A stretch of 63,420 nucleotides of DNA, filler included, from Olpidium bornovanus S191 (taxonomy: Eukaryota > Fungi > Olpidiomycota): NCBI GenBank assembly GCA_017911155.1. It is 30 parts of 30 records of this genome, joined end to end, with 100 filler letters (N's around TTAATTAATTAA, not from the genome) between each part and the next. Parts side by side here need not be neighbours in the genome. Positions count along the whole stretch, not along the records: positions 47,852 to 49,616 come from JAEFCI010009133.1; 29 more parts are not named here. The stretch is one strand, 5' to 3'. Below the pieces are notes generated by a model. The model ran no database searches. It was not told the DNA's origin and saw only the letters and a program-made list of their open reading frames with translations. Of this stretch, positions 48,064 through 48,740 are shown in pieces; the first letter of the stretch is position 1, and every line of letters begins with the position of its first letter. A program made the translations under genes and the position numbers.

Positions 48064-48740
48064 GAAGTACGACTGCTTCGCCGACATCACCCACTCGGCG
48101 CCGTACGGGTGCGGCGTGCATGATATCCATCTCTCGCCGTGGTCCAGCATCGCGAACAACGACGAAAAGTACGACATCGGCACCATACTGTTCGTTCCGG
48201 CTTTCGTCGGCGTCACTTTGCCGAACGGAGCGAAGCACAATGGTTGCCTGATGAGTACGTTACCTGCGCCGGTTTTTTTTTTTTTGCGGGGTGGGATGGG
48301 AAAAGCTTTGCAGCCTGTGGCGGGGTTGCTGGTGGTGGGTGGACTAGGAAGGGTACCTTGCTGGCCCCGCGCGTCGTTCGCTAAACACGTGAGATTGTCA
48401 ACCCCTTCCCCCCCCCCCACCTTCCTCTCCTTTTCCGTTCGGGATAAAAAAAAACCAGAGGTCGACCACATCGGCCACGGCAACCGCGGCGACAGGCACA
48501 TCGACTTGTTTGTGATGGAGGAGCATATGAGTGCGTTATTTTTTTGTGGTCGTCTTCTTCTTCCGTGAGCGCGTTTTTTAGGGTTTGGGTCGCGTCTTTC
48601 GGCTGATTTGTGAAGTTTTGTTTTTTTTTTCGTTTTTTTTTCCCACATTCTTTGCAGAGGAGAATTTCAAGAAGGCGCTGGGAAAAGCCGAACGAGTTGA
48701 CGTGGAATGGAATAGCCCGCGTTGCGTTGCTCAGTATTGA
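48064..48740 (+). CDS. 3D-domain (MltA/YuiC-like double-psi barrel) protein, three exons, 5' truncated
   Basis: Spliced: KYDCFADITHSAPYGCGVHDIHLSPWSSIANND..IGTILFVPAFVGVTLPNGAKHNGCLM|KVDHIGHGNRGDRHIDLFVMEEHM|KENFKKALGKAERVDVEWNSPRCVAQY*. Both GT-AG introns join in phase. Confidence 0.75.

Follow-up and report, generated by a model that had tools for sequence, protein, structure and literature searches.

An expressed Olpidium bornovanus gene for a cut-down MltA relative, seen in its three final exons

The contig JAEFCI010009133.1 of Olpidium bornovanus S191 was found to carry the three 3′-terminal exons of a gene that this fungus expresses and that encodes a cut-down relative of MltA, a bacterial cell-wall enzyme. 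It occupies positions 47,852 to 49,616 of the window, that is, the whole analysed stretch of 63,420 nucleotides, in which 30 parts of the genome are joined end to end. The encoded protein is a small, Cys-rich, single-domain member of the MltA/3D double-psi beta-barrel group, a reduced MltA comparable to YuiC of B. subtilis. The data as a whole are best explained by an expressed MltA/3D gene whose product would be a secreted lytic transglycosylase and whose family would have been acquired once from bacteria, and we consider this combined explanation probable.

Exon structure and expression

The features of the locus, all on the plus strand, were as follows.

47852..48063, plus strand: 3′ end of an upstream intron, the contig starting inside this intron (sequence reading)
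48064..48254, plus strand: exon A, coding ..G KYDCF..SIANND..LPNGAKHNGCLM (sequence reading, transcripts, HMMER, alignment)
48255..48458, plus strand: intron 1, 204 nt, GTACGT..CAG, phase 1 (transcript joint 48254>48459, three runs)
48459..48530, plus strand: exon B, coding (K)VDHIGHGNRGDRHIDLFVMEEHM (sequence reading, transcripts, alignments)
48531..48657, plus strand: intron 2, 127 nt, GTGCGT..CAG, phase 1 (transcript joint 48530>48658, three runs)
48658..48740, plus strand: coding part of exon C, (K)ENFKK..VDVEWNSPRCVAQY (sequence reading, transcripts)
48741..48900, plus strand: 3′ untranslated region, at least this far (contig pieces of runs X2 and X6 reaching 48900)

An earlier note, made from the sequence alone, had predicted three exons and two introns here, and the splicing was checked against transcript contigs assembled from three public runs, X1 (2012), X2 (2022) and X6 (2025). 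The contigs of all three runs skipped exactly 48255-48458 and 48531-48657, with GT..AG borders in both cases and zero depth within both introns, and they differed from the exons by 0-1 letters, the coding part being without mismatch. The transcript contigs of X1, X2 and X6 measure 835, 644 and 811 letters, with the coding exons towards their 3′ ends. Raw reads of a further RNA run, X24, which bears the species label of X2, gave no alignment to the locus and carry no weight either way. All exons and introns thus lie exactly where they had been placed, and the peptide motifs quoted in the note were correct on direct reading. Since the gene is spliced, expressed and eukaryotic, bacterial contamination is excluded, as had been argued from the introns.

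The AG acceptor at 48062-48063 opens exon A, which encodes most of the 3D-type core, and the upstream intron contains a poly-T of about 112 nt at 47862-47973. Each transcript contig carried 335-446 further 5′ letters before 48063 that are absent from this contig; as the alignment began only at 48063, with unlike letters before it, the earlier exons lie off the contig, and with them the N-terminus, in agreement with the earlier note. Two metagenome scans for the 5′ exons and a signal peptide, one with the 30-letter 5′ loose end and the other with a 30-mer of exon A, gave no match. At the other end, the reading frame of exon C closes with the TGA at 48738-48740, and its product shares a C-terminal VEW..P.C motif with the nearest relatives. 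Differences among the runs in the 3′ untranslated region were seen at 48753, 48759 and 48766, and the poly-C tract at 48759-48771 varied in length and letters.

These data correct the public gene model. The deposited protein BJ554DRAFT_1863 (P0001) is mis-annotated, its coding sequence starting at an ATG at 48296 inside intron 1, so that it is without most of its only domain; intron 2 is spliced in it as in the transcripts. Intron 1 holds no in-frame stop, and when the read-through of exon A, intron 1 and exon B was modelled, the intron-coded part gave pLDDT below 50 and only the exon-coded parts were confident.

In the rest of the contig (48741-49616), tRNA, Rfam and Pfam scans returned no tRNA, no Rfam match, no credible Pfam match on either strand and nothing bacterial-looking. 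The single match, weak and sub-threshold, was that of a minus-strand ORF at 49269-49511 to PF11038 DGF-1_5, with E 0.006 and 17.1 bits where the cut-off is 25.

Family, fold and signature residues

In an exhaustive HMMER search of 1.84 billion proteins, exon A matched P0002 with E 1.9e-14 and P0003 with about 2e-14, the former value being far beyond chance in a collection of this size. There were 41 matches at E<=1e-3; in the top ones, P0002 and P0003, exon B was aligned as a second stretch, and residues 54-105 of P0001 (exons B and C) matched the C-terminus of P0003. Exon A also reached the bacterial relative P0010 (E 2.5e-5), which itself matches the 3D family PF06725 (E 7.5e-11). Among 29 aligned family members, PF06725 was matched by 14 and the RlpA, expansin, barwin and cerato-platanin families of Pfam by none; six other Pfam families were each matched by a single member with E 0.0014-0.069, which was taken as chance. 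When the family profile was searched against the PDB, YuiC (E 3.6e-5) and MltA (E 0.015-0.03) were the only matches. NCBIfam gave a weak match to SpsC, and the nearest Atlas clusters were all PF06725.

Direct searches were less productive. PF06725 did not match exons A, B and C singly or the read-through of exon A, intron 1 and exon B, even at E<=10, nor the full-length nearest relatives P0002-P0005 at E<=0.01; the Pfam model evidently does not reach the Olpidium-type clade, and a match to it is an operational and not a structural criterion. In the same way, phmmer of the read-through against PDB sequences gave no match, and a word-based protein search found the deposited fragment itself as its sole match. 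As there is no direct PF06725 match, membership in the 3D family rests on transitive and profile evidence, and it is through the relatives that the MltA/3D assignment holds. The domain of these relatives measures about 170-200 aa in total, and the MltA-specific Pfam domain was absent from the ten top HMMER hits scanned, P0002-P0004 included.

The fold was modelled on residues 68-266 of P0003, a relative 50% identical to the window read-through, and not on the Olpidium protein itself. The AF2 model (pLDDT 93.6) predicted an MltA-like double-psi beta-barrel in this nearest full-length relative. With Foldseek, the top 14 matches were MltA-family lytic transglycosylases (MltA E 3.8e-5), and with VIA-align, MltA scored Z 9.5-10.2 over about 157-160 residues and YuiC Z 7.9 with about 86-88 residues aligned, the model covering MltA residues of about 97-335 with the insert skipped. 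Expansin, GH45, cerato-platanin, barwin and kiwellin gave Z 3.7-5.4 and Foldseek E>0.3. The 3D/MltA-type domain proposed earlier is thus borne out by a PDB profile that matches YuiC and MltA only and by the structural ranking, in which these two stand far above all others; a best match to a eukaryotic double-psi beta-barrel (DPBB) family, which would have spoken against the proposal, was looked for by profiles and structure and was not found.

The roles of the signature residues in YuiC and MltA, the catalytic Asp included, have been described (PMC4499186). The Asp of HIDLF (48503-48505) aligned with a nearly invariant column of the family and with RLDLY of YuiC, so that the equivalent of the catalytic Asp (MltA D308 / YuiC D162) is kept in HID, as had been noted. 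The first signature Asp (MltA D261 / YuiC D129) is Asn in SIANND (48158-48160); every eukaryote-clade sequence tabulated has Asn at this position, and Asn101 is invariant in an 18-sequence alignment of eukaryotes. The second signature Asp (MltA D297 / YuiC D151), which binds the -2 N-acetyl group in both enzymes (PMC4499186), is His in VDHIG (48467-48469), again as the earlier note had read it: the His occupies the canonical D-x-G Asp position, 11-12 residues ahead of the catalytic Asp, with the register not fully certain since one alignment (A2) puts the Asp directly before the His in the conserved column. In the Olpidium-like subclade this position is His, Ser or Ala. With two of the three name-giving Asp residues substituted, one of them the -2 N-acetyl binder, the protein may bind or act differently, or may no longer do so at all. 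Any signal peptide and the N-terminal third of the domain are off the contig, and so is the Thr by which the catalytic Asp is oriented in MltA and YuiC.

Phylogenetic placement and origin

For the trees, which were unrooted, the Olpidium gene was entered as two rows, exon A and P0001:56-105, after MAFFT --add and global L-INS-i of a read-through row had misplaced exon B. Both fragments fell inside a starred clade made up of eukaryote-type sequences only (99/93*), which joins bacterial sequences and in which the Olpidium-like subclade forms a separate deep branch (99/100*). The eukaryotic clade contains dozens of genes of Mucoromycota and Zoopagomycota on large fungal contigs, and the outgroup sequences lie in bacterial genomic context. 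Several of these members are auto-named '3D domain-containing protein' in UniRef. Exon A was at most 45% identical to any bacterial sequence, as against 49-56% to Olpidium-like relatives. No Dikarya or chytrids were among the named matches listed, from a search whose design was not one for showing absence elsewhere. Relatives were also present in one ciliate and in other non-fungal records, the eukaryotic matches including Stylonychia, Selaginella and Allacma.

By its position in these trees, the gene is a member of a eukaryotic clade common in Mucoromycota and Zoopagomycota, and any bacterial origin would be old and shared and not specific to Olpidium. The earlier interpretation therefore stands in part: the spliced eukaryotic MltA/3D-type gene is retained, while a special horizontal acquisition by this zoosporic fungus is not, the gene lying within a eukaryotic clade together with dozens of Mucoromycota and Zoopagomycota genes. 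We infer a single passage of the family from bacteria into an ancestor of the fungi or of a wider set of eukaryotes, early and long before Olpidium; as the trees are unrooted, the direction is drawn from the much larger bacterial diversity. The introns lend no support for intron inheritance, since no shared intron positions were found: the gene models for the copies in Mycotypha, Dimargaris and Neoconidiobolus have no introns, and a Fennellomyces intron is offset by 8 nt from intron 1 of Olpidium and differs from it in phase.

Possible function, alternatives and known relatives

The Olpidium protein is probably secreted, as suggested by the hydrophobic N-terminal leaders (judged by eye) of P0002-P0004 and P0044-P0046 and by the conserved Cys of close full-length relatives, its own N-terminus being off the contig. 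It would act as a non-hydrolytic lytic transglycosylase, in which the kept Asp would donate a proton to the beta-1,4 glycosidic oxygen and aid the sugar's own C6 hydroxyl in attacking C1, leaving a 1,6-anhydro end. The substrate would be a GlcNAc-containing glycan, either bacterial peptidoglycan or chitin-type wall material. The protein might serve against bacteria or in the management of symbionts, as the earlier note suggested. Because YuiC cuts penta-GlcNAc to a 1,6-anhydro product (PMC4499186), its chemistry works on chitin-type chains, and a chitin-type substrate is equally possible. A more specific version, in which the whole eukaryotic clade consists of chitin- or chitosan-directed lytic transglycosylases that cut the fungus's own wall or that of another fungus to 1,6-anhydro-GlcNAc, seems to us quite unlikely; under it, the shared Asp-to-Asn change and the loss of the -2 N-acetyl-binding Asp in the Olpidium subclade would reflect a shift of preference away from peptidoglycan and towards chitin or its partly deacetylated form. 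We found no description in the literature of this reaction class in eukaryotes, and no characterised eukaryotic 3D/MltA/GH102/PF06725 protein, activity data included, in the searchable literature.

Enzyme activity might also have been lost while the MltA-like barrel was kept, leaving a secreted glycan-binding or wall-loosening protein of the expansin or loosenin kind, whose target would be the wall of the fungus itself or, in infection, that of plant roots, or which would serve as a shield or sensor of GlcNAc polymers. Expansin-like proteins, cerato-platanins and loosenins of fungi, which share the fold at Z 4-5, are non-enzymatic binders. The substitutions point the same way, the first signature Asp being Asn across the whole eukaryotic clade and the second, the -2 N-acetyl binder of MltA and YuiC (PMC4499186), being His, Ser or Ala and so not even conserved in the Olpidium-like subclade; obligate root parasitism of Olpidium (PMC7865070) would also suit such a role. 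We nevertheless hold it to be somewhat improbable, as the single residue with a demonstrated catalytic role in MltA and YuiC persists here and is nearly invariant across the family, its conservation in fungal lineages that have diverged widely speaks for chemistry that has been retained, and the model is much closer to MltA than to expansins. That the protein belongs instead with the eukaryotic DPBB proteins (RlpA, expansin, barwin or cerato-platanin type) and has 3D-like motifs by convergence is exceedingly improbable: the barrel is common to all these families and the exons have no direct Pfam 3D match, but no family member of 29 matches those Pfam families, against 14 for 3D, the PDB profile finds YuiC and MltA only, and the relative's structure gives E>0.3 and Z<=5.4 for such proteins as against E 4e-5 and Z 10.2 for MltA.

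The remaining alternatives concern the source of the gene. The contig is only 1765 bp long, is labelled as MAG and has homopolymer runs at its ends, the source paper took a metagenome approach on non-axenic zoospores (PMC7865070), and relatives exist in a ciliate and other non-fungal records, all of which would agree with a contig of another eukaryote, fungus or protist, mis-binned from a non-axenic zoospore preparation or root sample. This is very doubtful given that the donor sites GTACGT and GTGCGT are of fungal type, the nearest named relatives are early-diverging fungi, the gene occupies its own deep subclade as expected from the position of Olpidium, and identical spliced transcripts recur in the runs of 2012, 2022 and 2025. 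A recent, Olpidium-specific acquisition of the gene from bacteria, for instance from those associated with the zoospores, has next to no likelihood in our view: the nearest relatives outside the eukaryotic clade are indeed bacterial 3D proteins, yet both fragments lie within the eukaryote-type-only clade (99/93*), exon A is nearer to its Olpidium-like relatives (49-56%) than to any bacterial sequence (<=45%), the gene has at least three spliceosomal introns, and the first-Asp D-to-N change is common to the tabulated eukaryote-clade sequences.

Returning to the reading as an MltA/3D-type enzyme, a close bacterial counterpart is YuiC / Sps (stationary phase survival) of Firmicutes (PDB 4WJT, 4WLI, 4WLK), the best PDB profile match, which is likewise a minimal single-domain MltA barrel with the 3D motif and whose D162 aligns with the HID Asp. 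Unlike the Olpidium protein, YuiC is bacterial and intron-free, keeps all three Asp, forms a domain-swapped dimer and has no Cys framework; the fungal clade has in addition LTYYW..MEGTG..C.C..CF, an N-terminal stretch whose aligned portions of MltA lie outside the YuiC core. MltA itself, membrane-bound lytic murein transglycosylase A (E. coli 2AE0/2PI8; CAZy GH102), fits the relative's model best on structure and shares the T.YY and EG(S/T)G motifs and the catalytic Asp with the relatives, but is a lipoprotein of about 340 residues built of two domains, one of them a large insertion, whereas the relatives are without the MltA-specific Pfam domain and the Olpidium protein is eukaryotic, spliced and Cys-rich, with Asn and His at the D261 and D297 equivalents.

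Close to it, too, are the '3D domain-containing proteins' of Mucoromycota and Zoopagomycota, which fall in the same eukaryotic clade (for example Dimargaris RKP37053.1, Syncephalastrum, Rhizopus delemar, Gilbertella and Parasitella) and have in common with the Olpidium protein the Cys pattern, the first-Asp Asn, the HNGC motif and a similar size of about 200-350 aa. The Olpidium-like subclade differs in having lost the canonical second Asp and in a distinctive K-V-D-x-I-G-R/H-G loop, and many Mucorales copies bear N-terminal LysM domains, a region that in Olpidium is off the contig. The 3D lipoproteins of Bdellovibrionota (e.g. Bdellovibrio bacteriovorus BDW_12030) carry PF06725, are related to exon A at E of about 1e-5 and have the same order of core motifs; in contrast to the Olpidium protein, these bacterial lipoproteins have all three Asp and contain long linkers of low complexity. 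In the tree they make up a clade of their own on the other side of the midpoint root, and other bacteria are nearer to the fungal clade. With expansin-like proteins, loosenins, cerato-platanins, barwin, kiwellin and GH45 the double-psi beta-barrel is common at the fold level only; sequence profiles gave no link between them, and the residues for catalysis and binding are not the same. Such fungal and plant DPBB proteins are secreted and Cys-rich and act on wall polysaccharides, including chitin.

As the family is common in early-diverging fungi, this is a modest find and not a one-off capture of a bacterial gene. It places Olpidium in an MltA-like family that is widespread in Mucoromycota and Zoopagomycota and has been named there by automatic annotation only. 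Olpidium is reportedly positioned next to the non-flagellated fungi, and the distribution of the family over Olpidium and the zygomycete lineages fits that position. The family adds one more bacterial wall-cutting fold to those that persist in eukaryotes; if active, its members would either serve the fungi as enzymes against bacteria or for nutrition, or represent a new means of chitin cleavage. Either would merit a bench test, for which the many Mucorales copies are easier to handle than Olpidium.

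Gene model and splicing

The region 47852-49616 is one complete contig of 1765 bp, on which the following features of the gene were placed.

Features of the gene (the acceptor from sequence reading; exons and introns from sequence reading and transcript contigs)
48062-48063, + strand: acceptor AG
48064-48254, + strand: exon A
48255-48458, + strand: intron 1 (204 nt, GTACGT..CAG, phase 1)
48459-48530, + strand: exon B
48531-48657, + strand: intron 2 (127 nt, GTGCGT..CAG, phase 1)
48658-48740, + strand: exon C, ending in TGA

The boundaries of the two introns were near-identical (ATGA/GTRCGTTA...CAG/AGG; 48251-48261, 48455-48461, 48527-48537, 48654-48660), both being in phase 1 and each splitting a Lys codon. 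The sole deposited product of the contig is "MAG: hypothetical protein BJ554DRAFT_1863" (105 aa; P0001), with a CDS at 48296-48740. Intron 2 is spliced in this model exactly as predicted here; its start ATG (48296) falls within intron 1, its first ~55 residues are translated intron, and exon A, the bulk of the domain, is missing. Such a model was possible because intron 1 is free of in-frame stops and its length is divisible by three.

Contigs of public sequencing runs were aligned to 47975-48900, and three runs from different studies (X1, 2012; X2, 2022; X6, 2025) each gave one contig covering 48063-48254, 48459-48530 and 48658 onward. With 0-1 letters differing, the joints lay exactly at 48254 to 48459 and 48530 to 48658 (GT..AG), and depth was zero in both introns. 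That these runs are RNA is a guess only; a form without both GT..AG introns is what spliced RNA yields. A raw RNA run with the same species label as X2 (X24) gave zero aligned reads and was uninformative on splicing. Each of the three contigs also extended 335-446 letters 5′ of 48063 with sequence absent from the contig of this gene, which shows that there are exons upstream of it and that it begins within an intron. The last 30 of these letters read in frame as ..LNLNCKCSPG, followed by KYDCF, and aligned with ..LNLGNCNCGEG..NCF of the nearest relatives. The three exons and two GT-AG introns proposed in the earlier note were thus borne out, as was its placing of the N-terminus off the contig.

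The transcript contigs break at a 3′ UTR poly-C tract (48753-48771) that varied among runs: 48753 and 48766 showed C>T and 48759 lacked a letter, through either strain variation or homopolymer error. On both strands of 48741-49616 no tRNA, Rfam match or credible Pfam match was found, and the longest ORFs there (49226-49573, +; 49269-49511, -) seem to have arisen by chance, the sequence being GC-rich. The contig ends in long homopolymers, ~112 T at the 5′ end (47862-47973, within the upstream intron) and T, then A, then ~28 G at the 3′ end (49536-49605), which are probably sequencing or assembly artefacts.

Family assignment and predicted fold

Neither the single exons A, B and C nor the read-through from exon A across intron 1 into exon B matched any Pfam family, and no match was obtained among PDB sequences. 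NCBIfam gave a weak match to the 3D-domain protein SpsC (E 0.018), and in a protein-language-model Atlas three clusters of PF06725 (the Pfam 3D family) were nearest to exon A (0.89), which was taken as a lead only. The analysis drew on the exons singly, on the read-through across intron 1, which has no stop in frame, and on the depositors' join of exons B and C (P0001). Homology was settled by an exhaustive HMMER search of 1.84 billion representatives, in which 41 proteins were obtained at E<=1e-3. The best matches were three unnamed proteins (P0002, P0003 and P0004; 253-381 aa) on contigs of ~1-1.5 kb; P0002 matched exon A at E 1.9e-14 with 56% identity, exon B forming a second matching stretch. 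Proteins of Mycotypha, Apophysomyces and Dimargaris ranked next (UniRef calls that of Dimargaris a "3D domain-containing protein"), and then many bacterial lipoproteins. As P0001:54-105 (exons B and C) matched the C-terminus of P0003, all three exons are homologous to the family. One of the 41, P0007 (E 7.3e-06, 30% identity), was rejected as an immunoglobulin-repeat protein (Ig_3, E 1.8e-27) whose best stretch crosses the translated intron, and it was excluded from every alignment and tree.

The bacterial relatives, mostly "3D domain-containing proteins" of Bdellovibrionota in a follow-up search, matched PF06725 above threshold (P0010, 7.5e-11). PF06725 was matched by 14 of the 29 aligned family members, and RlpA, expansin, barwin and cerato-platanin families by none of them; six other families matched one member each (E 0.0014-0.069) and were taken as chance. 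When the profile of this alignment was searched against PDB, YuiC, the minimal MltA relative of B. subtilis, was found at 3.6e-5 and MltA at 0.015-0.03, the remaining matches being non-significant (a CBS-domain protein, E 0.085; Lipase 2, 0.3-0.5).

Two sequences were modelled, the nearest full-length relative (P0003:68-266, from a 92-sequence alignment) and the window read-through. The P0003 model (pLDDT 93.6, pTM 0.88) retrieved with Foldseek 14 MltA-family lytic transglycosylases as its top matches (E 3.8e-5 to 1.2e-2), followed by YuiC; expansin, barwin, kiwellin and cerato-platanin appeared only at E>0.3. VIA-align gave Z 10.2 for MltA over 157 aligned residues, 7.9 for YuiC, and 3.7-5.4 for Cel45, expansins, cerato-platanins and loosenin. 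In the read-through model, from which the N-terminal third of the domain is missing, exon-coded parts had pLDDT 73-93 (79 for the HIDLFV strand) and most of the intron-coded stretch <50, which agrees with a non-coding intron 1. The fold family is thereby established as the 3D/MltA type that the earlier note had read, and neither profile nor structure placed a eukaryotic double-psi beta-barrel family first.

Distribution and origin

Exon A and exons B+C were each given a row of their own in two unrooted maximum-likelihood trees. The first, of 94 rows, gathered all the eukaryote-type sequences into a single starred clade (99/93*); its sister was a small group of metagenomic sequences, and it joined a succession of other sequences, of which two are bacterial by their gene neighbours (P0023 beside PASTA; P0136 beside BlaR1, BlaI, DsbA and a Ser/Thr kinase). 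The second, of 67 rows, placed both window fragments in a starred Olpidium-like subclade (99/100*), one of five branches that diverge deep within the eukaryotic clade (94/85).

Searching with a profile restricted to the eukaryotic clade recovered dozens of named Mucoromycota (Rhizopus, Mucor, Umbelopsis, Absidia, Cunninghamella, Endogone, Jimgerdemannia and others) and, among Zoopagomycota, Neoconidiobolus, Entomophthora and Dimargaris. The contigs that carry the fungal genes range from 26 kb to 2.25 Mb; RPB1 and a P450 are among the eukaryotic genes that adjoin the Dimargaris and Neoconidiobolus copies, and an unnamed relative (P0032) adjoins P450 genes. Non-fungal records of the same clade (P0161, P0263, P0264, P0248) bear the names of the ciliate Stylonychia lemnae, Selaginella moellendorffii (two copies, beside Entomophthora in the second tree) and the springtail Allacma fusca, and represent either contaminated assemblies or further eukaryote-to-eukaryote transfers. 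A clear member from Mucor velutinosus (P0170, 233 aa) is named "Eukaryotic translation initiation factor 3 subunit L" in NCBI and UniRef, which looks like an annotation slip.

Because bacterial diversity is far larger, a bacterial origin of the family is the economical reading, the trees being unrooted and the direction of transfer therefore inferred. That origin would then be an old one, shared by the clade: of the horizontal acquisition proposed for this zoosporic fungus, the bacterial source stands as that reading, and an Olpidium-specific event does not, the gene lying within a widespread eukaryotic clade. Intron positions were no help on origin; three fungal homologues were intron-free, and the nearest intron of Fennellomyces lies 8 nt from Olpidium intron 1 in another phase.

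Active site and proposed activity

The catalytic carboxylate of the family is MltA D308/YuiC D162, the -2 N-acetyl group is bound by MltA D297/YuiC D151, and a third conserved Asp is MltA D261/YuiC D129 (PMC4499186). The HID Asp (48503-48505) occupied the nearly invariant catalytic column of the alignments. In MltA, YuiC and most relatives the canonical second Asp precedes it by 11 residues; Olpidium has His there (48467-48469) and one additional loop residue, and of the five nearest relatives two have His, one Ser and two Ala. The alignments thus upheld the reading of a kept catalytic Asp and a His at the middle Asp position. In the motif V-D-H-I-G, the Asp immediately before this His fell, in a larger alignment, in a column that at least 90% of the sequences share, so the register against Bdellovibrio-type sequences is not fully fixed; spacing to the catalytic Asp favours placing the His at MltA D297. 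The first signature Asp was replaced by Asn (48158-48160) in all eukaryote-clade sequences tabulated, and N101 was invariant in an 18-sequence eukaryote alignment.

The protein is probably a secreted, disulfide-stabilised, minimal MltA-type lytic transglycosylase, in which the retained Asp would act as single acid/base on the beta-1,4 bond that follows a sugar of GlcNAc or MurNAc type, leaving a 1,6-anhydro end. The main rival, a non-catalytic protein that binds or loosens walls, seems unlikely for a domain of MltA fold that keeps this Asp; on its side, the Asp that binds the -2 N-acetyl group is missing, and lost activity, or else an altered substrate, could result. The classical substrate of the MltA/3D family is peptidoglycan, and this is fitted by the N-terminal LysM fusions of many Mucorales copies (P0182, P0189, P0194, P0208, P0212 and, from Fennellomyces sp. 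T-0311, P0025 at 1501-3062 of locus L006, with four introns, two within the MltA-like domain), whose architecture is that of bacterial SpsA/YocH-type 3D proteins. LysM also binds chitin. MltA binds chitohexaose (PDB 2PI8) and YuiC cleaves penta-GlcNAc (PMC4499186). The substrate of a lytic transglycosylase in Olpidium would be either peptidoglycan or chitin-type.

Family, fold and chemistry are already known, and fungal members are already auto-labelled in UniRef; our literature search found no paper characterising any eukaryotic member of the 3D/MltA family. Against the known family, the Olpidium protein is a modest variation, consisting of the Asn and His substitutions and a Cys framework, and the finding is its correct identification together with a corrected gene model.
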